Source: Octopus bimaculoides (lineage: Eukaryota). From it: a stretch of 37,432 bases of DNA. The stretch lies in assembly GCF_001194135.2 (NCBI RefSeq), contig NC_068988.1:30405726-30443157 (forward strand), given 5' to 3'. This document shows positions 17,012 through 37,432 of the stretch, one piece after another. The number at the start of each line of letters is the position of its first letter. Within the stretch, counting starts at the first letter, position 1. The position numbers and the translations under genes are program-made. Under the pieces are notes generated by a model. That model worked only from the letters and a program-made list of their open reading frames with translations. It made no database searches and had not been told where the DNA came from.

Positions 17012-20000
17012 CACCACCAACAACATCGAAAAATACCTTAGGAATGAGAACCCAGGTTTGAAATTTCCCCATGACACCTGATGCAGGCTGGAGGGTATAT
17101 CAGCCGAAACGTGTTAATGACAAACGATGAGGACAAATATCCGTCAAATGTAAATAATGTACATAATTCCTCATCTCTTAAATATAGAATTATATTGTTG
17201 TTATTTGGTTTTCTTTTACGTAGCAATTTGAAGAACAAGTGCGGGAAGACGAGAAAGTAGATATCATCAAAACCCAGAAGACTTCAAAGGGTCGTGTAAA
17301 ACAAAAGAAGATTACACTCGAGGAGACTCTTCCCTCTCCTGTTGGTCGACGTATTCAGCCTGTCATTGATCATGCTACCAAAGTGAAGGCTGAGAAAGAA
17401 GTAGCTTCTAAGAAGCGACAACAAGTAAGCGTTGATTCTTACGCGTCTTTTTGGCATTTTAGGGTAGTTGTTTGAGGCCAGTTTGAACTTATTTGGGGCC
17501 GGATTGGCCAGTTTAAATGCTAAAGGATTAAGCTTACCCTCCCCAAGTTTGTGTGAATGTTCCCCTACGTCAGTATTTCTCAACTATTTTTTTACCCATG
17601 GACTTCTTTGATTCCTGTTTTTAGCTAGTGGACCCCTGTAGCCATTTGCTGTGTAAAAATCCTGTCATACTTTTATATTTAAATATTATTAGGAATTGGA
17701 AAAAAAAAAAAATTGTTAAACTATTTTATGTATTGAAGAAACAAAATCTTATATGGACCCCAAGGGTCATATAGACCTCAGTTTAGAACCACTGATCTAT
17801 TAGAGTTGCTTTGAACTATGATATGAAATATTTTGCTTTAAGGTAGAAAAGAAGAGTGAATCAAAACGACTATCAAAGAAATGACCATATTTTTCAAAAA
17901 CACATTTTACTTCAATTTTCTTTCTTTTATTTTTACAGATCAGAAAGGAAATGAAAGAAGAAATTGGTGATGAAAATTCACAAGAACCTAAAAGCCTCAT
18001 TGAACGCCTTGGAGAACTTAAGCCAGGTGAGTTGACATTTTCCAAAATCTCTTTTCCTTTTCTGTTACTTTCTTTTCATCATTTGCTTCTTTATTTCACT
18101 CCACCTTTCTCTTCCTCTCTCTTCTCGCTGTCCCTTTCAATTTTCCCTATTTTTAATTGCTCTCTTTCTTCANNNNNNNNNNNNNNNNNNNNNNNNNNNN
18201 NNNNNNNNNNNNNNNNNNNNNNNNNNNNNNNNNNNNNNNNNNNNNNNNNNNNNNNNNNNNNNNNNNNNNNNNNNNNNNNNNNNNNNNNNNNNNNNNNNNN
18301 NNNNNNNNNNNNNNNNNNNNNNNNNNNNNNNNNNNNNNNNNNNNNNNNNNNNNNNNNNNNNNNNNNNNNNNNNNNNNNNNNNNNNNNNNNNNNNNNNNNN
18401 NNNNNNNNNNNNNNNNNNNNNNNNNNNNNNNNNNNNNNNNNNNNNNNNNNNNNNNNNNNNNNNNNNNNNNNNNNNNNNNNNNNNNNNNNNNNNNNNNNNN
18501 NNNNNNNNNNNNNNNNNNNNNNNNNNNNNNNNNNNNNNNNNNNNNNNNNNNNNNNNNNNNNNNNNNNNNNNNNNNNNNNNNNNNNNNNNNNNNNNNNNNN
18601 NNNNNNNNNNNNNNNNNNNNNNNNNNNNNNNNNNNNNNNNNNNNNNNNNNNNNNNNNNNNNNNNNNNNNNNNNNNNNNNNNNNNNNNNNNNNNNNNNNNN
18701 NNNNNNNNNNNNNNNNNNNNNNNNNNNNNNNNNNNNNNNNNNNNNNNNNNNNNNNNNNNNNNNNNNNNNNNNNNNNNNNNNNNNNNNNNNNNNNNNNNNN
18801 NNNNNNNNNNNNNNNNNNNNNNNNNNNNNNNNNNNNNNNNNNNNNNNNNNNNNNNNNNNNNNNNNNNNNNNNNNNNNNNNNNNNNNNNNNNNNNNNNNNN
18901 NNNNNNNNNNNNNNNNNNNNNNNNNNNNNNNNNNNNNNNNTTCGTTTTTGGTTTCTGTTTTTAGTTTTGTCATTCCTTTTCTTCACCCCAAATACATCGT
19001 TTCTCTGTTGAGCTTCCTGTTAGTCTTAAATCCTTTTATTCTTATAAATTTCCTTTGAATTCACTATAATCGTCTTGTTTTCTTCTGATCTATGATAGTC
19101 AGTCCTTTAAGCTTTCTGACAACATCTTTTGAGTTTGTAGGCCCCTTCTTTTTCTTTTCTGTAGTCCCTTACACTACAATGGCTTCAAGCCTTGTTTGGG
19201 ACAAAATCCTTGAAACAAACTAAAAAAAAAAAAAAAAAACCAAGATTTAATTACTTATAACGAGCTCTCAAGAATTTCTGTCGTCATTCCACCCTCTCAC
19301 TTAAATTTCTTATCTCTCTTGTTTCTCTTTTCCTTTTCTGTTACTTTCTTTTCATCATTTGCTTCTTTATTTCACTCCACCTTTCTCTTCCTCTCTCTTC
19401 TCGCTGTCCCTTTCAATTTTCCCTATTTTTAATTGCTCTCTTTCTTCAGGTTTCTTAGTCTCTTCTTCATCTATTCCCCATCTCTTACATTGCCTATATT
19501 TTAGTTTATTCTTTATATATGTAAAGGTCTTGTTTTAATAACTTCAGAGGATATTCAAAATGAAGCCGGTTGCTCAGAAGCTTCTTGTTGATGCTAAATG
19601 CCTATTTTTCCATCCTGTATCCGTATTATCCATTTGACCATTTGTCTGCTGATAACTTATTGACTGCTAGGGATCATTCTGTAAGGGTTCAGTATTCTTT
19701 TCTACTTTAAGCACAAGGCCTGAAATTTTTGGGGAGGGGGCCCAGTCGTTTAGATTGACTCCAGTATGCAACTGGTACTTAATTTATTGACCCTGAAAGG
19801 ATGAAAGGCAAAGTTGACCTCTGTGGAATTTGAACTCAGAATGTAAAGACAGATGAAATACCGCTAAGCATTTTGACTGGCATGCTAACGTTTCTGCCAG
19901 ATCGCTGCCTTATATAAGGCAAATGAACTATATCCAGTCCAAAATTCTATCTGTTTTGTGTTCAGGTTGGCCAGATTTGACCTCTCACACCAACCCTACA

Positions 20001-23000
20001 ATGTCTTTCTAAAAATAAACAATCACATCATCAACATCTCAAAGCTATGAGATAAAGTATGATTCATTCAAACCAACGTGAATAAATAAGTATCACATTT
20101 GACAGAAAAATTTGGATACTAAAGGGTTTTTGCAGTTTCTTACATTTTTATTGCTGATAGTTTGTGATTTTTAAGAAAAAAAATTCATATATTATGAAAT
20201 ATTTGATTTGTGTCTTTTTTTCTTCTTTTCTTAAATATAGCTCAAGCAATTAAATATAATTTTGGTGATGATGATGATGAAGAAGAATATTATCCCGTAC
20301 TCCATGAAAACCAGGCAGATGATTCCCCACCAGCTGATGTTTGCAATAACATGAATACGGGGGCAGAAGAAAATGATGTAGATGACGATGATGATGATTT
20401 TTTTGCTCCTAAAAAAGAGTAAGTTCAAAAAGTCAAACAAGTCCATTCGTTGAAGTAGTTGTATGCTGTCAACTTAATGTGACAGTCCCCTGAAGGGAAT
20501 AATACTACTGTTGGTTAGACCTAGGAAGTTGCACCGCTTCCTAGGTCTAACCAACAGTAGTATTATTCCCTTCAGGAGACTGTCACATTAAGTTGACAGC
20601 ATACAACTACTTCATCGTATCACTACTGCATAAATCTCTCTGAGAGATTTAGAAATGTATTATTTCTGAAGTTCATTCGTGTTATTTTGACAAAATCATA
20701 ATTTTAGAATTGGTAAAATTTGAAGAAAGATAAAAATTTTGGACATTTAAGAATATATATTCATAATTCATTTTAATAATTTTTTGTCAACCTTTAATGG
20801 GTTAAGTCATCCTTAAATGAGATAACCCTATGATTTCTTTAAAATTCAATAATATCTCCAGATAGTTTCTAACTTGGACAAGTATCTTTATATGTCTGTG
20901 TGTGTATGTGTGTACCCTTGTCTAGACATCACGTGATGGTTGTAAATGAGCATTATCTTCATATGAGTGAGGCTGTTTCCTTTCCCGCTTTCTTTGCAAA
21001 TCATGTCTCGCTTTGGGAAAAATATTACCCTGCTTGGATGTTGATGGGGGTTGGTGACAGGAAGGGCATCTCAGCTGTAGAAATCTGCCTCAACACACTG
21101 AGCCATGCTTGGATGGAAAAGTGCACATTGAAATGATGATGAGGCTTGTAATCCAGCCAAATAATGATCCCCATCTAATCAGTTTGACAACATACTGTGA
21201 ATGTTTCCATGTTTGCAAACTGTCACTCAGCTTAAGTTGTTGAAAAGAATTACTGTGGAATGTAATGGTGGACAAAAAGTATTGTTTCTACTCTAGGCAC
21301 AAGGCCTGAAATTTTTTGGGGAAGGAGCCAGTTGATTAGATCGACCCCAGTACACAACTGGTACTTAATTTATTGACCCCGAAAGGATGAAAGGCAAAGT
21401 TGACCTCAACAGAATTTGAACTCAGAATGTAGCGGCAGATGAAATACCGCTAAGCATTTAGCCTAGCGTGCTAACGTTTCTGCCAACTCACTGCCTTGGT
21501 GGACAAAATGTATTGACAAATGTGTGTTTATATGAGTTTTGGGCCACATTCAAATATAATGGATTTCAATGAAGAATGAGAAGTAGACAAGTGCAATGTA
21601 GATGTAGGTGAATTCCCAACACCAAGTGACAGGGTAAGATTTCTCGGTTAGAAAAAAGAATATTTCACTCTGACTGTAACCATGAAATTTATGCTAATAT
21701 TGGCCTAATAAGCCACCGCAGGACCTACGATGAGTAAAGCTTCTAATCTGGTCAGAGACCTGAAAGATGAATGTCAGGTGAAAGTCCCTGATATACTCTT
21801 TTACTTGTTTCAGTCATTTGACTGCGGCCATGCTGGAGCACCGCCTTTAGTTGAACAAATCAACCCCAGGACTTATTCTTTGTAAGTCTAGTATTTATTC
21901 TATCGGTCTCTTTTGCCGAACTGCTAAGTTACGAGGACGTAAACACACAAGCATCGGTTGTCAAGCGAAGTTGGGGGGACAAACACAAACACACACACAC
22001 ACAATAGGTTTCTTTCAGTTTCAGTCTACCATTTCCATTCACAGGGCTTCAGTTGGTCTGAGGCTACAGTAGAAGATACTTGCCCACGGTGCTACGCAGT
22101 GGGACTGAACCCAGAACCCTGTGTTTGGGCAGCAAACTTCTTACCATGCAAGCACATCTGCACCATTGGTAGATTTTTTTTGTTTTTTAACGATCCTTGA
22201 AACGTTTGTTTCTTTTGCAGTGCAAAGAAGCCCACTTCTCCTGCGAAGCCCACTTCTCCTGCGAAGCCCACTTCTCCTGCGAAGCCCACTTCCCCTGCAA
22301 AGGCAGCCAGCCCCAAGTTTGACGATGATGATTCTTCTGAGGATGAAAATGCCGACTTGTTTAGCCGAGTCAGTGAACAAAACAAGAAAGCTCGAGACGA
22401 CGCTGTCTTTGGGATATCAACTACACTTATAAAACCATCAATTAAAACCACAATTCCCAAAGAACCTATGAAAAGTGAGTGCTTTTGGCTTTCTTTATAA
22501 ATTTCTGATTATGATATTATATCTTGTAGTAAAAATTGTTTGCCAACATAACATGGCAGTCCTGGTTTAGGACGAATGTTGCTGAAATTAAACCCCAGGA
22601 GACATCGTCTCCCGCTGGCTATACGACACGATCTGTGTCCTTATATTTTCGAACAATATAAGGACACAGATTGTGTCATATAGCTACCTGGAGGCGATGT
22701 CTCCTGGGACTAAATTTTAGTAACATGTTATGTTGGCAAACAATCTTTACTTCAAAGTACTGTTGCTGAATATCTCATGTTATGAGATTTAAAAATAGTA
22801 ATTTTCTAATTTATAAATCAGTGACTAGTTGTCACTTTGAAAACTATATATTTCGAACGGGAATTTGGTAGCGCCACCTCTAGCTGAGCAATTATTCTGT
22901 TGAAGGGAAATAACCCAGAAATCGCGATACACAGATATTGTTTTGAGCTGAGCTGGGGTGTTAGATTCCCTTGTTCAAAAATATAAGGACACGAATCATG

Positions 23001-26000
23001 TCATATAGCCAGCTGGAGACGATGTCTCCTGGGGCTAAATTACAGCAACATTCGTCCTAAACCAGGACTGCCATGTTATGTTGGCAAACAATCTTTACTA
23101 CAAAGTACTGTTGCTGAATATCTCTCGTTGTGAGATTTAAAAATAGTAATTTTCTAACGATATATCTTGTCACATCTAAAAATAAAATCTTTTTTTTTTT
23201 TTTTCTTGTCTGCAATCCTGTTTGTTTTTCATTTTATTTTGCAATGTTGTGCCTCAAGACATCAGCAGTCTTCAGCCTTCATGCAAATCTATCAAAACTT
23301 CCCAGTTGTGGGCTTCACAAATTTCTCATTTCTTGGATCAGTTGCTTTCTATCAGAGCATATCATTGAAGCATACCTTGATGGAGTTCTTTCTTCCCTGT
23401 ACTTAACCGATCCTGGTGTCCTGCTGAGCTCGGTTCTCTTCCTGCATCTCTTTCTTACTCGCTGCCTCATGCAACACTGCCCACTCGTATTCAGATGGCA
23501 CAAACCATCTCTAGTTACTAGACATCATCTACACACCACATACCAAACCTGTATTGATTTCATGAATAGAGTCCTTGAAAGTATCCTTCAGTGGGGTCAA
23601 ACCAACCTTGTTTCTTTTTCACAACTAACAAACTCAAGCAACACTCATATGAAGAACCATTCACTCCCTCTAATATGAGTGGTACTCAGTTCAAGTCCTC
23701 ACAGTCGGTTCAAACAAATTCTGGGCCTCACTATCATCAAGGCTCTCTCATAGAAAAAATGCACCCTCTGTGTAACTAAGACTGCATCCCAAAGGCTAAC
23801 CCTACTCTTTAGGGCCAGAAGTTATTTCAGCCCCTGACAGCTGTTGACACAAGCCTGTAATGAGGTCCATAAACTCCTTAAACTTCCAGTTATTTTATGC
23901 TCCTTTATTGATATTTATTTACATGCATGCTTAATAAATGTTCCTCAGAATAATTGACTTCAATTGTCAAATATTGTTTTTGTTTGAATTTAAATATAAT
24001 ATTAGTCCACCTTCTATTTACAGGCACCATCACTTACCATTTATCTAGCGACGATGAGGATAAAGAACTCGACTTTGTACCTGAAGAACCTCTGAAGAAA
24101 GCAGTAAAGAAAAAGGCTCCCAAAAAAGAAAAGACAACAGAAAAATCCGGTAAATAAGAGTTTATATATCTTTTGTGATTCCGTGTGACGGAGGGAAGGC
24201 AAATAAAACTGAACATCGTGAGACTTTAGCTTAGAAGGGATGTATTTTGCATCGCCATTAAGAGTAGTGATGATGGAAATCTCTACATGGTTGTGTACCA
24301 ATGAGGGATTCTTTGTGTATTTACTAAATCTGCTTAAGGGGGGAATTCCCCTCCTCTTTTTTTCTTCTTTTTGCTTTTGCACATATTTGCTAGAGTAACT
24401 GTTCTTCTATCCAGAAATCCAACTCAACATAGTCTCAGTAGCAAGTAATGCCTTTCTGTCCTCTTTCGACCCAACTCTGTGGGTGCCATGTTATTTCTGC
24501 TCCGAAGCCATTATTTGCCTGCAATGAAGTGACTCTATTGACATTTAACTGACCATATCCAGCCCGAATATTCTACCTGTTTTATGTTCAAATGAACCAG
24601 ATCTGGCTTGTCACACGTGTCCTGCAATGTCATTCTGAAATAAACCACCACATATGAGGTAATAGACGATTCATTGAAAACAATGTGAAGGTATAAAACA
24701 TTACATTTGTCAGAGCAACCTGAATGCTAAATGGTTCAGCCAGCTGTGTCAGTTAATAAAAAAAAAAAGCTCTCCCCCTCACACGATAACATTTCAATAG
24801 TTTTATCATTATTTTATGATCTATTTGCACTACTATTTATTGAACACCAATTCTCTACATTTTGGTAATGCTTCAAGTGAACTACAACATGTTTCTCTTT
24901 GGGAATGTTCTTCCATTGCTGTTGGATAGCCTCATTTTATCTGGAGTAACCACTTTTTGCCCATTGACTCCTTTGCTTGCTATTTTAACTCAGGTGGACC
25001 CTCATAGACAAACAATGTCTAAAAGAAACCTTATATATTTATAATTAAATACCTCTTATATGGGCCCCACTTAAGAACCACTGCTTTCTAGCAAATAATT
25101 ATTACCTTCAAATATCGTCATGATGTGTGTTTCTTCCCTATTAACAGCTTGTTTGCTATTCTGCTGATGTGTGTGCATACGTATATGTGCTTTTTCTGTT
25201 TAAGTTTTGTGAGATGATTCCTATCTGCTTGTGAATTAACTCCACCATAACAACGCTTTTTCCTTGTTTAATTGTGTGCAACCACTATGTTGACTTAATT
25301 TAGACCGCAAAGAACGTGAAATCTTTAGAGCTTTTAGACGAAGTGTTTCACAAAGCGAACCAAGTCAATCCAGCAAATCCAAGCCTCCAAAAACAACTCC
25401 TGGTACTTCTTATTTTTGTTACTGTTGGTTAACGTTCACTAAAACTTTTTCTTAGTTAGCTTGTTTAATTACTGACTAAATTCCTGATAACTAATTCCAG
25501 AGCTGAATTTTAATTTTCGATTGGATTTTCAATTCGTTTTCGTTTACTAATGCATTTGGAAACAAGCGTATTACCATTTCAGTTTGTTCTTGACTAGGAA
25601 TGTAAGTTTGCATGCTTAGCCAGAGAAAACGGTTTGAAAGTTACAGCAATGTATCCTGCCTGAAACATTGTAATAGAGTTATAAGCCTGGTATACTTTAA
25701 GCCCAGAACATTTACTAGTTAAGACCATGTAGTGAAGATCGTATGTCATCTAGGCAAAGTACTACAGCCATGTTGTCATTTTGGCAAATAAAAATACATA
25801 ATAAATAGTTTAAAAACTATTTTCTTAGCCGTTTTCCTATAACTACTGGCTGTCCTACTTAAAGCTAATCTTTCGGTGGCTCATTGGAGTGAACAGAGAG
25901 TTACAGCCCTTGCTGGAGCAATGTACAATGGCTGTCATAAGATTGAAACTTTTATGTGACCAGCTGGAGCAATCAGCATAACCTCACAGACAACTCATTA

Positions 26001-28399
26001 CATTCAATAGCACTCGCACTTTTAGTTTCTCCACTGAAACAATCTCCCCTTCATTGTACTGCTGTCTGAAACCTATTCGTTCCATCCAGCTGTAAAAACT
26101 GCCAAAACAGAGACTGAAGTCTGGTGCAGTCTTCTGCCTGGTCAGATCCTGTCAAACCGTCCAACCCATGCCAGCATGGAAAGGCAGATGTTAAACGATG
26201 TTGATGATGACAATGCTCATTTACGACCATAACATGATGTCCAGGCAAGGGTACACACAGACACACAATTATCCATAGTGATCTATTTACACACACACAC
26301 ACACACATTATGCTTCTAGCTTTCATCCGTCAAGTGCACTCAGTAGGACATGGGTAGCTAGGATGTATATAACAACGAGGGCCTCTTTAGCAAGTAGGAC
26401 CTTTATAAGAAGGTCACTGGGACCTGTATAACAACTGCATCAGCCTCTGCACATTTCCCAGCTAACACTACTAACAATTATTTGGATTTAGTTGTATTGA
26501 ACTCTTTGTTAATTATCCTATTCATTATTTCATAATAAGCAATTACTTCTTTTCTGGGTATACTAATTACCACTTCAATAAATGCAAGTCATGTTTTCCT
26601 TACTCATTTTCTGTACCAATCACTGACTCCTTGTTTTCTATTCTGTTGTATTCTATTCAGCTTGTTTTCTATTCTGATGGTGTGTGTGCTTATGTGTGCT
26701 TTTTCTTTTTAAAGTTTTGTGAGATGATTCCTATCTGCTTGTGAATTAACTTCACTTTAACAATGCTTTTTCCTTGTTTGATTGTCTGCAAAAACTATGT
26801 TGACTTAATTTAGGCCGAAACCAACCTGTAATCTTTAGTGCTTTCAAAAGAACAGTTTCAGAAGATAAACCAAGTCAAACCAGCAAATCCAAGCCTTCAA
26901 AAACAACTTATGGTACTTCTTATTTTTGTTGCCGTTGGTTAACGTTCACTAAAACTGTTCTATATTTTAGAGATGACGAATTATGTCCATTATTTACATT
27001 TGATGGATATTTGTCTTCATCTTGTCTGTCTTTAACACAGTATTTCAGCTGATATACCCTCCAGCCATCATCAGGTGTCTTGGGGAAATTTCGAACTTAG
27101 GTTCTCATCCCTCAGGTATTTTTCAATGTTATTATTATTATAATTATTAGTATTATTATTCAGTTCAGTGCCTGGAATCGAATTTGTAATCTTGGGGTTA
27201 GTAGGACACGCTTTTAACCAGTATGCCATAGGCGTGGGTGTATGGCGTTGTGGGTAAGAGTGCGGTCTACTAATCCCAAGATTGCGAGTTTGATTCCAGG
27301 CAGTGACCTAAAAACAAAAAAGGAAAGTTCGAGCAAGGTTGTTGCCATTGCCGCTGGACTGGCTCCTGTGCAGGTGGCACATAAAAAAACACCATTTGAG
27401 CGTGGCCGTTGCCAGTACCGCCTGACTGGCCCTCGTGCCGGTGGCATGTAAAAGCACTCACTACTCTCTTGGAGTGGTTTTCGTTAGGAAGGGCATCCAT
27501 CTGTAGAAACTCTGCCAGATCAGATTGGAACCTGGTGCAGCCAATCTGTTCGCCAGTCCTCAGTCAAATCGTCCAACCCATACCAGCATGGAAAGTGGAC
27601 GTTATTGAAAAATACCTTAGGAATGAGAACCCAGGATCGAAATTTCCCCAAGACACCTGATGAAGGCTGGAAGGTATATCAGCCGAGACGTTGTGTTAAC
27701 AACAAACAAGATGAGGACAAATATCATCAAATGTAAATAATGTAAATAATGCTTACTAAAACTTTTTCAAAGTTAGCTTGTTTAATTACTGACTAAATTC
27801 CTGATAACTAATTTCAGAGCTGAATTTTAATTTCCGATTGGATTTTCAATTCGTTTTCGTTTACTAATGCATTTGGAAACAAGCGTANNNNNNNNNNNNN
27901 NNNNNNNNNNNNNNNNNNNNNNNNNNNNNNNNNNNNNNNNNNNNNNNNNNNNNNNNNNNNNNNNNNNNNNNNNNNNNNNNNNNNNNNNNNNNNNNNNNNN
28001 NNNNNNNNNNNNNNNNNNNNNNNNNNNNNNNNNNNNNNNNNNNNNNNNNNNNNNNNNNNNNNNNNNNNNNNNNNNNNNNNNNNNNNNNNNNNNNNNNNNN
28101 NNNNNNNNNNNNNNNNNNNNNNNNNNNNNNNNNNNNNNNNNNNNNNNNNNNNNNNNNNNNNNNNNNNNNNNNNNNNNNNNNNNNNNNNNNNNNNNNNNNN
28201 NNNNNNNNNNNNNNNNNNNNNNNNNNNNNNNNNNNNNNNNNNNNNNNNNNNNNNNNNNNNNNNNNNNNNNNNNNNNNNNNNNNNNNNNNNNNNNNNNNNN
28301 NNNNNNNNNNNNNNNNNNNNNNNNNNNNNNNNNNNNNNNNNNNNNNNNNNNNNNNNNNNNNNNNNNNNNNNNNNNNNNNNNNNNNNNNNNNNNNNNNNN

Positions 28400-28451
<52 letters not shown>

Positions 28452-30850
28452 TGTGCTTCTAGCTTTCATCCGTCAAGTGCACTCAGTAGGACATGGGTAG
28501 CTAGGATGTATATAAGAAGGGCCCATGTACGACCTCTAGAACAAGGTCACTGGGACCTGTATAACAACTGTATATTTCTTGGCTAACATTACTAACAACT
28601 ATTTGGATTTAGTTGAATTAAACTCTTTGTTAATTAACCTAATCATTATTTCATAATAAGCAGTTACTTCTTTTCTGGGTATACTAATTACCACTTCAAT
28701 ACATGTAAGTCATGTTTTCCTTACTTGTTTTCTGTACCAATCACTGACTCCTTGTTTTCTATTCTGATGGTGTGTATGCATATATGTGCTTTTTCTGTTT
28801 AAGTTTTCCTATCTGCTTGTGAATTAACTTCACCTTACCAATGCTTATTCCTTGTTTGATTGTCTGCAAAAACTATGTTGACTTAATTTAGGCCGAAACC
28901 AACCTACAATCCTTAGTGCTTTCAAAAGAACAGTTTCAGAAGATGAACCAAATCAAACCAGCAAATCCAAGCCTTCAAAAACAACTTATGGTACTTCTTA
29001 TTTTTGTTACTGTTGGTTAACGTTCACTAAAACTTTTTCTTAGTTAGCTTGTTTAATTACTGACTAAATTCCTGATAACTAATCCCAGAGCTGAATTTTA
29101 ATTTCCGATTGGATTTTCAATTCGTTTTCGTTTACTAATGCATTTGGAAACAAGCGTATTACCATTTCAGTTTGTTCTTGACTAGGAATGTAAGTTTGCA
29201 TGCTTAGCCAGAGAAAACGGTTTGAAAGTTACAGCAATGTATCCTGCCTGAAACATTGTAATAGAGTTATAAGCCTGGTATACTTTAGCCCAGAACATTT
29301 ACTAGTTAAGACCATGTAGTGAAAATCGTATGTCATCTAGGCAAAGTACTACAGCCATGTTGTCATTTTGGCAAATAAAAATACATAATAAATAGTTTAA
29401 AAACTATTTTCTTAGCCGTTTTCCTATAACTACTGGCTGTCCTACTTACAGCTAATCTTTCGGTGGCTCATTGGAGTGAACAGAGAGTTACAGCCCTTGC
29501 TGGAGCAATGCACAATGGCTGTCATAAGATTGAAACTTTTATGCGACCAGCTGGAGCAATCAGCATAACCTCACAGACAACTCATTACATTCAATAGCAC
29601 TCAAACATCTAGCTAACACTACTAACAATTATTTGGATTTAGTTGTATTAAACTCTTTGTTAATTAACCTAATCATTATTTCATAATAAGCAATTACTTC
29701 TTTTTCTGGGCATACTAATTACCAGTTCAATGGTATCTACACTTAAGTCATCTTTTCCTTTTATGGTTAAATCGTTTATCAGATTCCAGCTTTGTCTTTT
29801 GCTATCCATACACCAGGTTCATTGCAGCATGGTCTCTCCATTCTTCTTAGAATGTAATTAGAGACTCAATGTACCCTGGGTGGTGGTTAGAAAAATACAG
29901 CATTTGTCTGGTGTTTCGTTAGTTATGACACAAATGTCATGCGTCATCATAATAATGTTTTATTCCAGAACGAGTGTTTTTCATTTTTCCAGCTGTTATC
30001 GTTTTTATTGCAGTGTTTTGTTGGTCCTTTTTAGTGAAGGATGAAAATTTTGTACTAAAATTTAAAAGGGAGTCAGAGGTGCAACTTATACAGAAGTCAT
30101 CATCATCATCGTTTAACATCTGTTTTTCATCCTGGCATGGGTTGGACAGTTTGACAGGTTTAGAGATCCAGCGGCTGCACCAGGCTCCAATCTGATCCGG
30201 CAATGTTTCTACAGCTGGATGCCCTTCCTAATGCCAACCACTCTGAGAGTGTAGTGGGTGCTGTTTTTACATGCCACTGGCACAGGAGTCAGTCAGTTGG
30301 ACCTGGCATTGATCACATTCGGATAGTGTTTTTTATGTGCCACTAGCATGGGGCTCAGTCAAGTGGCACTGGCATCGGCCACATTTGGATGATGCTTTTT
30401 ATGTGCCACCAGCATGGAGGCCAGTCTGTGGGGTACTGGCATCAGTCACAATAAGATGGTGCTTTTTACATGCCGCAGGCACAGGGGACAGTCAGGCGGA
30501 CCTGGCATCGATCATGTTCGGATAGTGCTTTTTAAATGCCACCGGCATGGTGGGTATTCAGGTGGGTACTGGCATTGGCCACGTTCAGATGGTGCTTTTT
30601 ACGTGCCACCAGCAAATATAGTAAATGTGAATATCTCTGTCCTGTTGGAATAAATGTGTCTTTGTCTTTGAATTTTAAATGTTTTCAGGAATTTCATTGA
30701 TGAAGTTAAAGAGATTTTATTGATTTCTTTATTGTTATTGTCCATTTTCTAGAAAAACCTGTTAAAAAGAGAAAAACCAAAAAGAAGGAAGACAGTGATT
30801 CCGACAGTGGTTTTGTCCCTAAGAAACCCAAAGTAACTAAAGTCAAGAAA
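615..30850 (+). CDS. TOP2: DNA topoisomerase II (type IIA), multi-exon, 5'-partial and probably 3'-partial; 22 exons traced
   Basis: Hallmark motifs [16 protein letters not shown] (TOPRIM), [39 protein letters not shown] (catalytic Tyr), [10 protein letters not shown] and ELPIRTWTQ join across canonical GT-AG introns with matching phases. Confidence 0.98.
990..1246 (+). mobile_element. Octopus-type SINE-like repeat, family S1 (AGGAAGGGCATCCAG ... (ATG)n tail)
   Basis: Shares core with more than 10 copies in the window; a further copy lies at about 1392-1592. Confidence 0.7.
1658..1763 (+). CDS. TOP2: TOP2 exon (VTKNKVEK...KIKYYK-G)
   Basis: ttacag acceptor; weak donor G|GTTTTT; 106 nt; phase 1 joins next exon to give KGLGTS. 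Confidence 0.93.
2371..2729 (-). mobile_element. tRNA-derived CORE-like SINE, family S2 (OR2-like)
   Basis: Minus-strand head GTGGCTGTGTGG / GGTTCAGTCCC (A/B box-like), CACCTTGGGCAAGTGTC core; related copies at about 350-470, 3806-4100, 8478-8790, 14960-15122 and 21792-22155. Confidence 0.75.
2909..3018 (+). CDS. TOP2: TOP2 exon ([14 protein letters not shown]...ASINL)
   Basis: ttgctag acceptor, CTG|GTACGT donor, 110 nt. Confidence 0.97.
3141..3233 (+). CDS. TOP2: TOP2 exon ([14 protein letters not shown]...MGLPE), absent from ORF track
   Basis: ttttag acceptor, GAG|GTAAAT donor, 93 nt; conserved AFSKK..ERKEWL motif. Confidence 0.96.
3304..3747 (+). mobile_element. S1 SINE with 4+ copies of an internal 66-bp unit
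   Basis: Units start at 3304, 3370, 3436, 3502 and 3568, followed by the AGGAAGGGCATCC core and GATGATGAT tail. Confidence 0.8.
3806..4100 (-). mobile_element. S2 SINE copy
   Basis: Homologous to 2371-2729. Confidence 0.7.
4501..4737 (+). CDS. TOP2: TOP2 exon (LYLYGKG...DGLKPGQRK...YHHGE)
   Basis: ttctag acceptor, GAG|GTAAGA donor, 237 nt. Confidence 0.97.
4850..5060 (-). mobile_element. tRNA-derived SINE, family related to 16166-16486
   Basis: Shares CAGCTGAGTGGACTGGAGCAAC block (reverse complement at about 16270-16290); tRNA-like head on minus strand. Confidence 0.6.
5976..6124 (+). CDS. TOP2: TOP2 exon with catalytic tyrosine (ASPRY; Tyr codon 6105-6107)
   Basis: aacag acceptor, AG|GTACCA donor, 149 nt; [11 protein letters not shown] and [12 protein letters not shown] motifs. 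Confidence 0.97.
6304..7736 (+). mobile_element. piggyBac-like element spanning a gap
   Basis: TTAA|CTCTTTCGTTACCA ... TGGTAACGAAAGGG|TTAA; acidic ORF start [22 protein letters not shown] at 6563 could be a transposase N-terminal relic. Confidence 0.8.
7969..8200 (+). CDS. TOP2: TOP2 exon (SVGKRIF...[12 protein letters not shown]...DPLNM)
   Basis: ttgcag acceptor, ATG|GTGATT donor, 232 nt, phase 2-0. Confidence 0.96.
8356..8790 (+). mobile_element. S1 fragment fused to S2 3' portion
   Basis: One 66-bp-type unit, then GGCACCTTG...GACTGAAACAAATAAAAGAAT. Confidence 0.65.
9359..9558 (+). CDS. TOP2: TOP2 exon (VPWFKNFKG...ELPIRTWTQ...PSVI)
   Basis: ttccag acceptor, AT|GTAATT donor, 200 nt. Confidence 0.96.
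10226..10361 (+). CDS. TOP2: TOP2 exon (DYKEYHTDT...STNSM)
   Basis: ttttag acceptor, ATG|GTAAGT donor, 136 nt. Confidence 0.96.
10725..10953 (+). mobile_element. S1 SINE copy
   Basis: AGGAAGGGTATCCAG core and GATGATG tail; another copy at about 11655-11950. Confidence 0.7.
11083..11278 (+). CDS. TOP2: TOP2 exon (VLFDQNGC...KIDGLVKI)
   Basis: ttgcag acceptor, G|GTGAGA donor, 196 nt. Confidence 0.96.
11410..11500 (-). mobile_element. Truncated hammerhead-bearing repeat (family H1)
   Basis: Reverse complement reads GACGC CTGATGA A GGCTG...CAACC GAAA TG TT. Confidence 0.7.
12565..12662 (+). CDS. TOP2: TOP2 exon (ENVSKKDL...[10 protein letters not shown]...KNK)
   Basis: ttctag acceptor, AAG|GTAAAA donor, 98 nt. 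Confidence 0.95.
12791..13007 (+). mobile_element. 217-bp piggyBac-like MITE
   Basis: TTAA|CCCTTTCGTTA ... AAAAAGG|TTAA; a related copy starts at about 13039 and runs into the gap. Confidence 0.75.
14708..14842 (+). CDS. TOP2: TOP2 exon (EKDESSDD...[22 protein letters not shown]...EAK), absent from ORF track
   Basis: tgttag acceptor, AAG|GTAAAT donor, 135 nt; conserved FNYxLxxPLWxLTKEK motif. Confidence 0.95.
15964..16047 (+). CDS. TOP2: TOP2 exon ([28 protein letters not shown]), absent from ORF track
   Basis: ttcaaag acceptor, GAT|GTGAGT donor, 84 nt; matches the ELxxLxxKxPxDLWxxDL segment. Confidence 0.9.
16166..16486 (+). mobile_element. tRNA-derived SINE with CORE-like segment
   Basis: GTGGCTTCGTGG / GAGTTCAATTCC boxes; TGTGTCCTTGAGCAAGACACTT core. 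Confidence 0.7.
16894..17189 (+). mobile_element. H1 element: tRNA-like head + (AAT)n + hammerhead-motif tail
   Basis: A box TGGCATAGTGG 16900-16910, B box-like GAGTTTGATTCC, hammerhead motif 17073-17115; homologous to both arms of 26957-27754. Confidence 0.8.
17224..17424 (+). CDS. TOP2: TOP2 exon (QFEEQVRED...[13 protein letters not shown]...KKRQQ)
   Basis: cgtag acceptor, CAA|GTAAGC donor, 201 nt; LPSPxGxR motif. Confidence 0.93.
17571..17794. mobile_element. hAT/Charlie-like MITE
   Basis: Termini CAGTATTTCTCAA ... TTTAGAACCACTG; no clear TSD. Confidence 0.5.
17939..18026 (+). CDS. TOP2: TOP2 CTD exon (IRKEMKEE...[12 protein letters not shown])
   Basis: ttacag acceptor, G|GTGAGT donor, 88 nt, phase 0-1. 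Confidence 0.9.
19690..19909 (-). mobile_element. tRNA-derived SINE with Deu/Nin-like domain, family S3
   Basis: Minus strand GCCTTTCATCCTTTCAGGGTCAATAAATTAAGTACC; copies at about 12000-12160 and 21282-21497. Confidence 0.7.
20241..20418 (+). CDS. TOP2: TOP2 CTD acidic exon ([16 protein letters not shown]...FFAPKK)
   Basis: aatatag acceptor, GA|GTAAGT donor, 178 nt, phase 1-2. Confidence 0.85.
20451..20614. mobile_element. 164-bp palindromic MITE-like insertion with 4-bp TSD TCGT
   Basis: 78-bp arms with 1 mismatch, 8-nt loop, TCGT on both flanks. Confidence 0.8.
21282..21497 (-). mobile_element. S3 SINE copy
   Basis: Homologous to 19690-19909. Confidence 0.7.
21792..22155 (-). mobile_element. 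S2 SINE, near full length
   Basis: Homologous to 2371-2729. Confidence 0.75.
22221..22474 (+). CDS. TOP2: TOP2 CTD exon with (KPTSPA)4 repeat (AKKPTSP...PKEPMK)
   Basis: ttgcag acceptor, A|GTGAGT donor, 254 nt, phase 2-1, open in the expected frame. Confidence 0.87.
22228..22299 (+). repeat. Coding 18-bp minisatellite x4 (KPTSPA)
   Basis: AAGCCCACTTCTCCTGCG units, near identical. Confidence 0.95.
22524..23157. mobile_element. Foldback MITE with 133-bp TIRs and an extra right arm plus flank
   Basis: 22524-22656 is the reverse complement of 22971-23103; a second right arm occupies 22655-22755. Confidence 0.75.
23240..23800 (+). mobile_element. Decayed non-LTR (CR1/Jockey-like) reverse transcriptase fragment
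   Basis: LSKLPSCG...SWISCFLS...LDGVLSS...PGV resembles the segment before GVPQGS; frameshifted YSDG at about 23488 matches the YADD position; [12 protein letters not shown] resembles WxxxNxxxFN. Confidence 0.7.
24024..24149 (+). CDS. TOP2: TOP2 CTD exon ([14 protein letters not shown]...KTTEKS)
   Basis: ttacag acceptor, G|GTAAAT donor, 126 nt, phase 1-1. Confidence 0.87.
25304..25402 (+). CDS. TOP2: TOP2 CTD 99-nt exon, copy A ([33 protein letters not shown])
   Basis: ttaatttag acceptor, G|GTACTT donor, phase 1-1, open frame. Confidence 0.7.
26814..26912 (+). CDS. TOP2: TOP2 CTD 99-nt exon, copy B ([33 protein letters not shown])
   Basis: same splice sites as copy A, phase 1-1, open frame. 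Confidence 0.72.
27034..27079 (-). ncRNA. Degenerate hammerhead motif (H1)
   Basis: GACAC CTGATGA T GGCTG..CAGCT GAAA TA CT GTGTT on minus strand. Confidence 0.55.
27652..27697 (+). ncRNA. Hammerhead motif (H1) with A14G change
   Basis: GACAC CTGATGA A GGCTG..CAGCC GAGA CG TT GTGTT. Confidence 0.6.
28892..28990 (+). CDS. TOP2: TOP2 CTD 99-nt exon, copy C ([33 protein letters not shown])
   Basis: same splice sites as copies A and B, phase 1-1, open frame. Confidence 0.75.
30097..30612 (-). mobile_element. S1 SINE with about 5-6 internal 66-bp units
   Basis: (CAT)n tail, GGATGCCCTTCCT core, tandem units. Confidence 0.8.
30753..30850 (+). CDS. TOP2: TOP2 CTD exon with basic NLS-like cluster ([33 protein letters not shown])
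   Basis: ttctag acceptor, AAA|GTAAGT donor, 98 nt, phase 1-0; no stop codon, so more exon(s) must follow. Confidence 0.88.
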
Positions 30851-31075
30851 GTAAGTATTTTGTCATTTCTCTCTCCATTTGTATCTTCCTCATATTGCCA
30901 TAATTTCCATAACAGCTACTACAGGAGATCATTATTTCTTAACGAACATTGATTATTCTCATAATTTCATTCTAATTTGAATTGTTTTTATTGCCATTTC
31001 TGTACGATGATAGGATTGTCTGTGAAGTTCTGATACTGTATCGTTGAAGTACTTGCTTAACCCTTTAGTATTTAA

Positions 31076-31299
31076 CCCTTTCCATACCAACCCACCTGAA
31101 ACCAGCTCTGGCTCTGTAGTACAATTGTCTTGTTTTCATCAGTTCTGAATTAAAATCTTCCACCAAACCTTAGTCACAATTTATGTTCCTAACACTAACT
31201 TAATAATGATAACTAAGTTAGTTTACTAAATTCTTTGTTATATTTAAAGTAATTGAAAGAAACACAGAGCATCTCAGAATAAATACAGTAACGAAAGGG
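31076..31299 (-). mobile_element. piggyBac-like MITE, same family as 12791-13007, opposite orientation
   Basis: TTAA|CCCTTT ... CGAAAGGG|TTAA; reverse-complement similarity along its length. Confidence 0.75.
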
Positions 31300-31344
31300 T
31301 TAAAATTGGAGAGAGAATAAAGTGGGCCTTAACGATAATGATGA

Positions 31345-31345
<1 letters not shown>

Positions 31346-31395
<50 letters not shown>
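31346..31395 (+). repeat. (TATC)n microsatellite running into a gap
   Basis: Read directly; other microsatellites include (CA)n 28400-28450, (ATG/ATA)n about 35600-35710 and (CT)n 36551-36589. Confidence 0.95.
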
Positions 31396-32956
31396 NNNNN
31401 NNNNNNNNNNNNNNNNNNNNNNNNNNNNNNNNNNNNNNNNNNNNNNNNNNNNNNNNNNNNNNNNNNNNNNNNNNNNNNNNNNNNNNNNNNNNNNNNNNNN
31501 NNNNNNNNNNNNNNNNNNNNNNNNNNNNNNNNNNNNNNNNNNNNNNNNNNNNNNNNNNNNNNNNNNNNNNNNNNNNNNNNNNNNNNNNNNNNNNNNNNNN
31601 NNNNNNNNNNNNNNNNNNNNNNNNNNNNNNNNNNNNNNNNNNNNNNNNNNNNNNNNNNNNNNNNNNNNNNNNNNNNNNNNNNNNNNNNNNNNNNNNNNNN
31701 NNNNNNNNNNNNNNNNNNNNNNNNTTTTTTTTTAACTTATTTCGTGAATTTTATTTTATTTTTTAAAAAAAAGAAACAAAACAAAGCCTTTTTTTTTTTT
31801 TTAAATATTTCCTTCAGATTTCATAATAAAAGATTTTAGGAACTTCTCCCATCCCATAACAACTCCATCCCTTGTTAGGTTTCATTCATCTTGTTAATTC
31901 TCTCCATGACTTCATCTTCTTTTTATCTTTATAACAACTTTCCACCAGTCTTCTTCCACTTACCTTTCTCACAAAAGCCGTGTTTGTTCAGTTCAAGTCA
32001 GGCTTTTGAACTGAGGTGGTCGGAGGTATAAAACATCCAGATATTCATTCCATTTCTGTCTCATCTTCATTAATTTTACTGCAGCGATTGTGAACCACTG
32101 ACCCAACCACACACAAAACAACCATCCTTGTCAGGTGATATTGCTCTATTCTGGCGTGGCTGTCTGTCTGTCTGTCTGTTTCTTTGCATGGAAAGCTGTT
32201 AAATTCTTGTACTTACCAATTTCCATAACTTATTCCTTTCACTCAATGCTGTCATATTTCTTATCTCATTCGCAAGAAATGGTCTAATGTTGGCATTGAA
32301 GACTCAAACAAAAAATGGAAAGAAAAAAAAAAGAAGGGGTCATTTGGCAATCTCAACATGTTTTCCCTTTGACAATGGACTGCGTGTGTAAAGTGAATGG
32401 TGTATGTGATGCAGAGATTGGATTGTGAGTTTCTGTCCTTGTCTGTTGTTTGTTTAAATGCCTGCAGTATTAAGGGAGGAAGGAGAACACTACTTTCTTT
32501 TCTTTTCTTTCTCTCTATCTCTCTCCCTCTCTCCCTTCTCTTCTCTTGGTTCTCAGATTAATGAAAAAAAAGCATCGATGGTTCTTACTACCATCCACAT
32601 TGCATACAAACAGAGTTGGACTGAAGGTGTTGCTGTGACAGCAATCAAGTGGAGTGTGCAGCAGTGCATAAATGTGATTGTAAATGATGTGCCATGTCTG
32701 AAGGAGTGAATGTCTGTTGGCACACCACCACAATTTCCGTGGTTGGATCATGTGGGTTACTGTTACAATTTTCAGCAGGACTTCTATATATCAGTCACCA
32801 AATCACCCTGAGTCTAAGGGATTTGGCCAACGAACCTCAGTGTTTTAAATAAATCTCCACATATTTACACACATGTTGTTGTTGTTCTTCTTTATTTATT
32901 TTTTTTTTTTTCCCTCAACACATACAGATGTTTGTCGACGAAGTGCTTTTGGTATT

Positions 32957-33400
32957 CATCATCATCATCGTTTAACGTCTGCTTTCCATGTTAGCATGGG
33001 TTGGACGATTTGACTGCAAGCCAGAAGGCTGCACCAGGCTCCAATCTGATCTGGCACAGTTTCTACAGCTGGATGTCCTTCCTAATGCCAACCACTCTGA
33101 GAGTGTAGTGGGTGCTTTTACTTGCCACCGGCACAAGGGCCAGTCACACGGTACTGGCAATGGCCATGCTCAAAGTGGTGTTTTTTATGTGCCACCTGCA
33201 CGGGAGCCAGTCCAGTGGCACTGGCAACGACCTCACTTGAATGATTTTCTAACGTGCCACCAGCACAAGTGCTAGAAGGCAACGCTGGTAATGGTTACGC
33301 TCAAATGGTGCTATTTAAGGGCCACTAGCATGGAAGCCAGACAGCTGCTCTGGCAATGAACACACTCAGACAGTGCTGTTAGTGCTCCACTGGCGCGGTG
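32957..33400 (-). mobile_element. S1 SINE with degenerate internal units
   Basis: (CAT)n tail and core as in the other copies. Confidence 0.75.
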
Positions 33401-33912
33401 CCAGTTATTGAGTATGGTTCAATTACGATTTCACTTGCCCGAACAGGTCTTTGCAAGCAGAGTTTTATCTCTAGAGATAGAAAAAAAAAAATGAAAAATT
33501 TTAGTAAGACCCCTTAATGCAGGCCCTGGGTAGGATTGAACCCTGCCCAGGATGTTCAATGTGGCTGTCTAATTATGTCTCTACCCACGAGACCACCAAG
33601 ACATCCAACATTAATGTAGTAAATTAAGAGATATTTAACTCTATCATAACTAAAGATAAAAAAACAAAAACTATCTCATCACAGCTGTAGCTCAGTAATT
33701 AATCCCAAATTTGGGGACCTGTTTAGATGCCTTTGTAGGTAAGGACATTGATTAGTAAGTAGGGATTTAATGCACTGGGAGAGGGTTTCAATCTGTAACT
33801 CTCCCAAGGAATTACAAGAGCAGTGGAGTGCGGAGAGTTAATATTTCTGCTGGGAAACCAATTTCCAGGTGCTGAACTTCTCTTGTGAAAGCCTGGGGCC
33901 TTGTGATTAGGG

Positions 33913-34175
33913 CAGTGTTTCTCAATCAGAGTTCACACGATCCTTGCGGGACCATATAAGATTTTGTTGCTTAAATTTATGCGGGATAAATTGGTAATAC
34001 TTTTGCAATGCACAAAATGTTTTTATACAGTTAATAATAACATTTAATTATAAAAGTGAAATAGGATTGTGTTTTTTTATTTTTCATTTCAAACACCAAA
34101 TGGCTTTGAAGATCCAGTAGAGTAAAGTATGAAATCAGAAGGGATCTTTAGGCATAAAACGGTCAAGAACCACTG
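33913..34175. mobile_element. hAT/Charlie-like MITE
   Basis: CAGTGTTTCTCAA ... AAGAACCACTG termini. Confidence 0.5.
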
Positions 34176-34759
34176 GGTAAGGTTATGCCACTCATGGTAG
34201 CAAGATCGTGGTTTCAGTTCCTGGAGCAGGTGGTGTGTTTTGTCCTTGTGCAAAGCATGTTGCTCCAGTCGACCTTGACTGAATGAATAACCCTGCTATG
34301 GACTACTATATCAATCAAAAGCAATGTTGTGGCCTGAAAGCTGTGGAAACCAGGTGACCAACCCTATGAGTCTTAGGGCTTGAGGACTAATGTTCTCAGG
34401 CTGGTGATGATGGTGGAACTTCACAAAGACTGGTTGAAGGGTTGATAGAACTTGACAAGTGATGAAATGAAACAAGTCTGTTGTTCATAGCACTTCAATC
34501 TACACAACTAAACAAATACCATGAAGGGGCAACTTACTGCAAGCAACAGCGAGGACTTGGGTTCTGGTTAAGATACAGTACAGAGCTGATTTTGTTTAAT
34601 GGTTATGGGCAAGTTAATGCTAACCTAATCAATATATTGAGCATGATAAAGTAATTAGAAACATCTTCCATTACAGCTCCAAGTTGACCTCACATGGATT
34701 TGTGTATTTATGTATACAGTAATCCTTCGCCATATCGTAGTTTATTATTTTAAGCTTAC

Positions 34760-35588
34760 ATTGATTCCTCCGTGGTGTTGTTTTGCATTTATAGTAAAAT
34801 AAATATATGCAATCACGGAGATGTACTTGCATAGTAAGTGGCTTGATCTGAGATCGTGTGCTGAAACAAAAACAATTGCAGCATGGAAGGTGTTTATAAG
34901 CCATTTAAAATACACACACAAAAACCATTGGATTCATCATCATCATCATCGTTTAACGTCCGCTTTCCATGCTAGCATNNNNNNNNNNNNNNNNNNNNNN
35001 NNNNNNNNNNNNNNNNNNNNNNNNNNNNNNNNNNNNNNNNNNNNNNNNNNNNNNNNNNNNNNNNNNNNNNNNNNNNNNCACATACCTGCATACATACACT
35101 CACACACACACACATATACAAATATGTAAGTACATTCTTGGATTCTCTATTTTGCTGTTTTAGAAATACGAATGAGATTAAAGAAAAACAGACAAACGTG
35201 CTATGCTAATAATATATATATAATTAAAATGCAGAAATTATTCTAAACATTACAGAAATGCATTGTATAGATATCTCTATCGTCTGCTGTGTAAAACAAA
35301 ATACTAGCAAAAGAGTATTTCAAAACAAGGGAGACGTAAAGTTTATATGCGAAGAAGGAGAAACTATAGAAAGAAGAAGAGAAAAAGAGATAGGTATGAG
35401 GTGGGGAAAAAAAGGGTGATTAAGGGAATTGATAAATTAGTTAGTTATCGAGAATTGATTTTCAAACGATACTTACTTGTGTTTGGTACCTGAGTGTGAA
35501 TCCGAGAGGTAAATAGTACCAGTAACAGCACAGCCAAAGTCCCAGGACAACCTGCAAGTGCTGTCTTCATTATCAATTTGACTCGCTT
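34760..35588 (-). other. Candidate antisense two-exon segment (35588-35477 and 34860-34760), possibly encoding a signal peptide
   Basis: Polypyrimidine-AG acceptors, GTAAGT and GTAAGC donors; MKTALAGCPGTLAVLLLVLFTSRIHTQ; no recognisable homology. Confidence 0.3.
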
Positions 35589-36550
35589 CTAAATTGAAGA
35601 AGAGAATGATAGTAATAAATAAAATAATAGTAATAATGATAATAATATTAATACTAATATTAATGATAATGATGATGATGATAATGATGATGATGATAAT
35701 GATGATGATACTTAAATGAATAATTGTAATTAAAAAAAAAGTTGAAATGTATACCAGAATGTAACAACAAACCGGAACGATAACGGCCAAAGAAAAAAAA
35801 AAAAAGATAAACAAAGTAGAAAGACAAAAATGTAATAAAACAATAAAAAGAATAAGAAATGTACAGTAAAAGTAAAACAAAAAAAACAATGGAAAATTAA
35901 GAAAAAAGAAAACGAATGAAAATAAACTAAAACAAAAAAGAAAAAAAGAAAAAAAGAAAAGGAAAAGCCATTACTTGCGTAAATACTCGAGAAAAGTGTT
36001 GGGAGTTTGTTAGTGGTGAGTGGAGTGTGAGTGAACACTTGTCATCTCTTTNNNNNNNNNNNNNNNNNNNNNNNNNNNNNNNNNNNNNNNNNNNNNNNNN
36101 NNNNNNNNNNNNNNNNNNNNNNNNNNNNNNNNNNNNNNNNNNNNNNNNNNNNNNNNNNNNNNNNNNNNNNNNNNNNNNNNNNNNNNNNNNNNNNNNNNNN
36201 NNNNNNNNNNNNNNNNNNNNNNNNNNNNNNNNNNNNNNNNNNNNNNNNNNNNNNNNNNNNNNNNNNNNNNNNNNNNNNNNNNNNNNNNNNNNNNNNNNNN
36301 NNNNNNNNNNNNNNNNNNNNNNNNNNNNNNNNNNNNNNNNNNNNNNNNNNNNNNNNNNNNNNNNNNNNNNNNNNNNNNNNNNNNNNNNNNNNNNNNNNNN
36401 NNNNNNNNNNNNNNNNNNNNNNNNNNNNNNNNNNNNNNNNNNNNNNNNNNNNNNNNNNNNNNNNNNNNNNNNNNNNNNNNNNNNNNNNNNNNNNNNNNNN
36501 NNNNNNNNNNNNNNNNNNNNNNNNNNNNNNNNNNNNNNNNNNNNNNNNNN

Positions 36551-36596
<46 letters not shown>

Positions 36597-37107
36597 GACA
36601 TTCTCAACCTTTTAGTTTTTTTTCAAAGTCAAATGTTTGAAATTTTTTTTCTGTTTGAAGTATTTGACTTTTATGCATCCACGTATGTATGCGGATATCT
36701 ATAAACATGTATGGATGTAGGCATACACGTGTGTATGTAGATATGCATACATGTAGGTATGTTTGCATGTAGGTATGTACATAGGTGTACGTAGGTATAT
36801 ATACACTTTTGCATGAATGTAGCCTCCTATGTATGTAGACACGCCGAAGTTCAGAAATAGCAGCTAAAGTGCTATTAATAAATTAATAATCCTTTACCCT
36901 TTTATTTGTAATAATTATTCACTCCCTGATAGTAAACCGCAGATTTTCTGCGGTATTGCTTGTGACGCACATGGTAATTCTTGAGGAGGGATAAGGACTG
37001 ACAGGCCTATGTAAGTTCGGAGGTGCTGGTTATTTTATGTTGATGCATGATGTCGCTTGGTCGAGCATGCATAATTTGCCTGCATCTTCAAATTTGCAAA
37101 CTAGAAT

Positions 37108-37167
37108 ATCATACTGATGACGGGAATGAAGGTTTTTACTATTCTGATCCAGAAACGCGTCTATGAT
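37108..37167 (+). ncRNA. Minimal type I hammerhead ribozyme motif (family H2)
   Basis: ATCATA CTGATGA [stem II] GAAA CGCG TC TATGAT: 6-bp stem I, intact core, palindromic stem III ACGCGT, UC cleavage site. Confidence 0.75.
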
Positions 37168-37432
37168 TAACTAAGACTGGTTAGTTTCGTTGTTTTTTTC
37201 TTCTTGTTTTGCCTTTGTGAGTTACAAGTATTGCTATCTGTTGGAGTTTTAGCACTTTAGTTGCTATTTCTGAACTTCGGCATGTGGTGAAGCAACTGTT
37301 GCTGATCCCTTAATTATGTCTATAAATGTATGGTGTTTACATACCGAAGGGCTTGGTAAAAATTATTAATTATTAATCTATCAATAAATCAATAATCCTT
37401 TACCCTTTTATTTGTTATATATATATATATAT

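Follow-up and report, generated by a model that had tools for sequence, protein, structure and literature searches.

Exon duplication, in its classical model, expands the internal repeats of disordered protein regions by copying symmetric exons of phase 1-1. Tandem exon duplication is a well-described class of event (PMC8373072, PMC6071210), and mutually exclusive clusters under docking/selector RNA pairing are known from Dscam, srp and ATE1 (PMC6071210, PMC7797038). Enforcers of mutual exclusivity include a too-short intron, incompatibility between U2 and U12 splice sites, a frameshift leading to nonsense-mediated decay (NMD), and docking/selector pairing itself (PMC6071210). For TOP2, one report (10.1101/2024.10.15.618281) describes a C-terminal domain (CTD) that governs localisation, chromatin binding and behaviour, and regulation, roles split in vertebrates between TOP2A and TOP2B, which differ mainly in these disordered domains. 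A literature search found no report of tandem exon duplication in TOP2. Here, a stretch of 37,432 nucleotides from Octopus bimaculoides (contig NC_068988.1, positions 30,405,726 to 30,443,157, RefSeq assembly GCF_001194135.2; hereafter the window) was found to carry, in its TOP2 gene, three tandem 99-nt copies (A, B and C) of one exon-like segment. Their sequence, frame and setting point to a probable lineage-specific tandem exon duplication in the part of the gene coding for the protein tail, and there is about an even chance that this triplicated tail exon acts as a set of independent in-frame cassettes supplying zero to three modules.

The three copies lie exactly where the sequence-only reading of this DNA had placed them (Table 1), and its by-eye counts of their differences proved exact, namely 21 (A/B), 23 (A/C) and 5 (B/C) with zero indels, corresponding to pairwise identities of 77–95%. 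All five B/C differences, which fall within four codons, change an amino acid, again as had been claimed. All three copies share their splice flanks, actatgttgacttaatttag over the 20 nt upstream and gtacttcttatt over the 12 nt downstream, and downstream the identity among the three reaches at least 25 nt past the donor. The 1-1 phase is likewise correct, each copy beginning with two codon bases and ending with one, and the preceding tail exon also ending with one. A single frame is open across all three copies, and it is the frame required by the tail exons on either side; any subset of zero to three copies joins in frame, as does a direct join of 24149 to 30753. The copies bear the marks of a tandem exon duplication, being adjacent, same-strand homologous segments of one gene that have kept their splice sites, length and phase. 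Each encodes a module of 33 residues, rich in Ser, Lys, Pro and Thr, with a conserved core (I-[FL]-x-A-F-[KR]-R-x-V-S) and a conserved tail (SKSKPxKTT), so that 17 of 32 residues are invariant among the three modules, including I..AF.R.VS and SKSKP.KTT. The core might be read as a PIP-box-like motif (QxxIxxAF) or a basophilic kinase site (F-K-R-x-V-S), and no claim is attached to either.

The host gene, judged by homology along its exons, is TOP2, and the forward strand of the window carries most of this eukaryotic gene. Distant TOP2 proteins were placed by tblastn on exons between 9359 and 17421, the TOP2 matches carry PF00521 and PF08070, thereby establishing homology to the core domains, and a Toprim-type sequence of 16 residues begins near 615. 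Tail exons rich in Lys, Ser and Asp begin at 17224, 20241, 22221, 24024 and 30753. A protein search with the whole tail construct yielded 8000 candidates and no match, low-complexity words having probably flooded the list, and a second search, which left out low-complexity sequence and took in the end of the core domain, returned only distant TOP2s (37–49% identity) and no cephalopod TOP2, the best named match being a land snail TOP2 at 49% identity. Both DFVP and DSDSDSxF(V/I)P motifs occur in the tail exons flanking the array, and both are also present in the snail protein. A Pfam scan of four tail variants gave nothing significant, with no match to DTHCT (PF08070) in this region of the tail. 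For the exon preceding the array, the end at 24149 given by the sequence-only reading holds, and the start has been corrected to 24024.

Self-comparison resolves the array into three tandem units lying between the two flanking tail exons. The repetition runs far into the introns, over 868 nt at 93% and 671 nt at 85%, so that it cannot be ascribed to chance, and the unit was found nowhere else in the window, a SINE-like piece excepted. Units of about 1.5 kb had been proposed, a figure that agrees with the period from A to B (1510 nt) and fails for that from B to C (2078 nt), which includes a transposon of ~793 bp and an assembly gap of 512 N. A unit of ~1.5 kb comprises ~165 nt of intron, the 99-nt exon, and roughly 750 nt or more of further intron. 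The tail of unit 3 (29611–29760, 150 nt) has its counterpart in the upstream part of units 2 and 3; since a tail matching the start of the unit is to be expected of a tandem array, this stretch is taken as the array end. Unit 3 also carries a 12-nt deletion of its own.

Divergence among the units (U1, U2 and U3) is mosaic. For the pairs U1/U2, U1/U3 and U2/U3, respectively, it amounts to 13%, 15% and 9% over the upstream 165 nt, to 21%, 23% and 5% in the exon, and to 5%, 1.0% (6/612) and 5% in the downstream intron. Sites at which U1, U2 or U3 is the odd one out number 25/2/5 between position −61 and the exon end, 1/5/1 downstream and 7/6/7 further upstream. B goes with C in the exon and proximal upstream sequence, unit 1 with unit 3 in the downstream intron, and units 1 and 2 have a spacer insertion in common. 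Three segments with three different groupings indicate exchange between units, by gene conversion or unequal crossing-over, assembly chimerism being the less likely source of the mosaic.

The patch of high divergence separating A from B and C consists of the exon and ~60 nt upstream of it, and stops at the donor. Compared with the downstream intron, the exon is markedly more diverged in both A/C (23/99 vs 6/612, p=4e-16) and A/B (21/99 vs 10/168, p=3e-4), and any excess over the upstream 165 nt is not clear (p=0.09, 0.13). The 99-nt copies have no indels, whereas their flanks have indels of 4, 12 and 20 nt. This excess of exon divergence implies that the distinction between an A type and a B/C type is older, or has evolved faster, than the surrounding unit. 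Positive selection was considered as its cause and is not supported, dS (0.24) and dN (0.25) being equally high; an older split, or coalescence, that escaped later homogenisation of the flanks would fit the patch better than adaptive change. Such an escape may reflect either selection keeping two exon types apart or a divergence of 20% that itself blocks conversion.

Composition sets the copies apart from the introns in which they lie. All three are A-rich islands in a T-rich intron, with an AT skew of +0.32 to +0.38 as against a median of −0.11 for the 6.6-kb interval between the flanking exons and +0.2 to +0.5 for the neighbouring tail exons, and only 0.2–1.1% of 99-nt segments in this interval reach the skew of the copies. 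The make-up of the module peptide (S/K/P/T, SKSKP) similarly resembles that of the adjacent tail exons. An exon-like, A-rich composition favours descent from a genuine exon, and it is quite probable that one or more of the copies are true exons. What the sequence-only reading proposed survives in its structural part, a symmetric phase 1-1 segment triplicated in the CTD region of TOP2, and in its assignment of exon status to a partial extent, by composition.

According to the mechanism proposed here, a unit of ~1.5 kb containing a single 99-nt exon with symmetric 1-1 phase would have been triplicated in tandem within the tail-coding part of TOP2, and the array later reshaped by inter-unit exchange and transposon insertions, each copy adding one 33-residue module to the disordered tail. 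With identical weak splice signals, recognition of one copy would most likely mean recognition of the others. Independent inclusion appears the most likely behaviour given the shared signals, the long introns between copies (1411 nt for A–B, 1979 nt for B–C), the GT-AG boundaries at all copy splice sites and the lengths divisible by three, as introns of this size impose no steric block and co-inclusion, being in frame, cannot be filtered by NMD. The copies would then behave as independent in-frame cassettes giving a variable number of modules, from zero to three, and not as a strict one-of-three choice. A length divisible by three and sub-optimal splice sites are features of a skippable cassette, and the weak sites would make skipping frequent. 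A transposon hairpin beside the B donor could bias inclusion further, and two inverted SINE-like pairs, one bracketing B and C (26148–26211 with 30096–30158, 91%) and one bracketing C (27343–27604 with 30114–30374), could form long-range RNA stems that loop out B and C, or C, favouring A alone. We infer that the segment originated as a true exon and that the mRNA takes in more than one copy.

A series of observations weighs against this proposal. No sign of purifying selection is seen, dN/dS being 1.04 for A/B and 1.23 for A/C; the B/C changes comprise five non-synonymous and no synonymous substitutions, and the differences number 8/7/6 at the three codon positions, with no third-position excess. 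Freedom from stops and indels, to which the sequence-only reading had drawn attention, is confirmed for all copies but is uninformative, since openness is expected by chance: under simulated random substitution the frame stays open in 43% of cases after 21 changes (P=0.43) and in 80% after 5. The donor (CTG/ATG|GTACTT) is weak, scoring −0.8 to −0.9 on a consensus matrix that is approximate and serves for ranking only, as against 2.3–8.5 for most of the gene's donors, and 12–14% of all GTs in the interval reach as high a score; one other exon of the gene has a GTACCA donor. The polypyrimidine fraction (0.55–0.65) lies at the low end for the gene, the ~793-bp transposon sits 44 nt past the B donor, and a profile built from the three cassette peptides found no relative in a HMMER scan of 1.84 billion representative proteins. 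Finally, the assembly is a draft in which 7 gaps interrupt these 37 kb, one of them inside the array. Some of these points would suit a history in which no copy is an exon, an intronic segment of 1.5 kb with an open AG...GT interval having been triplicated while the mRNA joins 24149 to 30753. That join is in frame, the substitutions show no codon-position bias, the 33-residue module has no homologue in the retrieved TOP2 tails or other searched proteins, and the copies' donor and acceptor are no better than 12–20% of random GT/AG sites in the interval. Such a history is nonetheless improbable in view of an exon-like composition within the top 1% of the interval, a length of 3n whose sole frame open in all copies is the one that the flanking phases need, a peptide composition like that of the neighbouring tail exons, and a patch of excess divergence that falls on the exon and does not continue past its donor. 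It is possible, though on balance unlikely, that one copy alone is the working exon, constitutive or cassette, and that the other two are recent, unused, neutrally drifting and skipped by-products of an intronic segmental duplication. The dN/dS values near 1 and the exclusively non-synonymous B/C changes fit this alternative, as do a B/C exon no better conserved than the introns (5/99 vs 50/625, p=0.41), a transposon tolerated so close to the B donor, the inverted pairs that could loop out B and C, and the weak splice sites. However, the splice signals are identical in all three copies, so that nothing visible separates a used copy from an unused one, every copy keeps its frame without indels, and the A and B/C types remain distinct though the adjacent intron has been homogenised to 1%.

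The same distinctness bears on whether A, B and C form a true mutually exclusive cluster, with exactly one of them per transcript and alternative tail isoforms as the outcome. Homologous, adjacent exons of equal length often become mutually exclusive (PMC6071210, PMC8373072), and the A and B/C types have stayed 21–23% apart beside an intron that was homogenised, yet the usual enforcers are absent or at chance level: neither the inter-copy introns nor the GT-AG sites impose exclusivity, and in-frame co-inclusion escapes NMD. A search for docking/selector pairing between the outside intron and the three units found only three 10-nt complementarities common to all, close to the number expected by chance, and the longer inverted repeats are transposon copies that do not occur in every unit. 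Mutually exclusive splicing, which had been offered as one outcome of the array, is thus very improbable. Its companion claim, of regulated CTD isoforms, finds no support in the tests made here, dN/dS being ~1, the donor GTACTT and polypyrimidine tract weak, and a transposon lying 44 nt from the B donor. A fuller version, in which the TOP2 CTD would be diversified by tissue- or stage-specific inclusion of cassettes (A versus B/C type, zero to three copies) and the types kept distinct by selection despite intron homogenisation, may be regarded as decidedly improbable. A different kind of doubt concerns copy number. Were B and C two haplotypes, or one repeat collapsed or expanded and placed in tandem over the gap, the third copy would be an assembly artefact and the true array would have two units, as might be suspected from the frequency of gaps in this draft, the position of one of them between B and C beside a transposon present in just one unit, and the 99% identity of the 612 nt downstream in unit 3 to unit 1. 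To this explanation we give a slim chance only, as B and C differ by 5% in the exon and by 8–9% with 7 indels upstream, which looks too diverged for alleles, as the gap is flanked on both sides by sequence colinear with a full unit, and as unit 3 is structurally distinct, having its own deletion and no spacer of the 26016–26459 type. The gap itself begins 975 nt past B, ends 492 nt ahead of C and touches no copy; its left edge corresponds to unit-1 position 25570 and its right edge, an (AC)n tract, to unit-1 position ~26289, and colinearity of these flanks with unit 1 leads to the expectation that ~715 nt of ordinary unit sequence are hidden. It could also hide collapsed extra units or a mis-join of B and C. 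The earlier warning of an artefact across this gap accordingly does not apply to the frame of the copies, the gap being intronic, and does apply to the count of three, which is provisional across it.

Table 1. Features of the TOP2 tail array and its surroundings (window coordinates)
Feature	Position	Strand	Description
TOP2 tail exon before array	24024..24149	+	ends in phase 1, ..TCC G|gtaaat; DFVP motif comparable to snail TOP2 tail
Tandem unit 1 (limits approximate)	25138..26652	+	exon A between 165 nt of upstream and 613 nt of downstream sequence, then spacer with SINE-like element and (AC)n
Cassette copy A	25304..25402	+	99 nt, encodes (D)+32 residues
SINE-like dispersed repeat, unit 1-2 spacer	26083..26211	+	complementary to 30096-30158
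Tandem unit 2 (limits approximate)	26653..28740	+	plan of unit 1, enlarged by transposon, N gap inside
Cassette copy B	26814..26912	+	99 nt, encodes (G)+32 residues
Non-autonomous element of ~793 bp	26957..27749	.	terminal inverted repeats of ~148 nt (26980-27127 / 27604-27750), 9-bp target-site duplication ACTAAAACT; unit 2 only
Assembly gap, 512 N	27888..28399	.	in B-C intron; flanks colinear with unit 1
Tandem unit 3 (limits approximate)	28741..29760	+	without spacer of the 26016-26459 type
Cassette copy C	28892..28990	+	99 nt, encodes (G)+32 residues
Inverted SINE-like copy in intron past array	30096..30374	-	complementary to 26148-26211 and 27343-27604
TOP2 tail exon after array	30753..30850	+	encodes (E)+32 residues; matches snail TOP2 tail at 54.5% identity (22 aligned positions, E=0.036)

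Searches directed at the module and the interval gave few further leads. No counterpart of the module occurs in six invertebrate TOP2 tails or in Pfam, so that it is not a conserved element of the TOP2 tail, and the conserved 3' part of the cassette, sought as an exact pattern in metagenome contigs, gave 0 matches. The sole match of the HMMER scan (P0007, a bacterial polyketide synthase (PKS) of 1659 aa with ILSAFQRT in five acyl carrier protein (ACP) domains) was rejected as a chance motif and not homology. Rfam and tRNA scans of the interval showed nothing above threshold, and a snoR160 match inside the transposon was discarded at 27.8 bits, under the gathering score of 42 bits.

Further mobile and repetitive sequence was noted in the gene. 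The ~793-bp element contains an internal palindrome (27159–27312), and the SINE-like repeat has at least 10 copies scattered through the TOP2 introns in either orientation, among them 26083–26211, 27494–27595, 30096–30221, 3622–3747, 32956–33075, 1123–1245, 11856–11954 and 10818–10945. In the intron past the cassette array, a 66-nt tandem array (30264–30614, 5.3 copies, 73% matches) is related, in inverted orientation, to 27343–27458 inside the transposon. Within the coding sequence, exon 22221–22474 holds an 18-nt tandem repeat (22227–22302, 4.2 copies, 96% matches) that encodes (PTSPAK)x4, a second expansion, of microsatellite type, in the same disordered tail and one rich in S/T-P sites. 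The same exon encodes the peptide ENADLFSRV (22340–22370), which matches D(D/A)LF(D/K)xM of three distant invertebrate TOP2 tails (P0001, P0002, P0004), and this match to a conserved tail motif marks the exon as genuine TOP2 tail.

Within the window the TOP2 gene model is incomplete between 17434 and 20240 and from 30851 to 37432. In the former region, exon 17224–17433 ends in phase 0, whereas exon 20241 requires one preceding base, and the conserved NPWSD-motif exon is not visible, probably because it lies within the gap at 18173–18940. In the latter, no terminal exon was found past 30850 in the window, and gaps occupy 31396–31724, 34979–35078 and 36052–36550.

If the TOP2 CTD of this animal is indeed varied by the number or choice of exon copies, the array would represent an independent invertebrate route to TOP2 isoform diversity, in which splicing would achieve what vertebrates do with the TOP2A and TOP2B paralogues, and would offer a natural experiment relating the function of a disordered tail to its number of repeated modules. 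That isoform diversity arises from the array is our hypothesis, to which the selection analysis lends no support. If only one copy is used, the locus would be an ordinary young intragenic duplication, useful mainly as a warning when gene models are built on gapped assemblies.

Comparison with described systems places the array closest to the general class of tandem exon duplications (PMC8373072, PMC6071210), with which it shares adjacent exons of equal length and phase copied together with intron, identical splice sites and a preserved frame. It departs from that class in showing no sign of purifying selection on the copies, and from its old clusters in particular, where exons are conserved and introns are not, whereas in the present array part of the intron has diverged less than the exon. 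Like the clusters of Dscam, srp and ATE1, it is an array of similar exons derived from a tandem genomic duplication that included intron; unlike them, it yielded no docking/selector pair above chance when searched, and it combines long introns with in-frame co-inclusion. The analogy with TOP2A and TOP2B is conceptual only. In the paralogues (10.1101/2024.10.15.618281) as in the array, variation is confined to the disordered tail and leaves the catalytic core untouched, although vertebrate diversity stems from whole-gene duplication and not from exon copies in one gene, and the module itself has no detectable counterpart in the vertebrate or other invertebrate TOP2 tails searched. The classical exon-duplication model differs from the octopus array in that one TOP2 copy (B) has a transposon nearby and inclusion of all copies is only predicted; in both, tandem copying affects a phase 1-1 exon whose length is 3n, each copy adding one low-complexity module.

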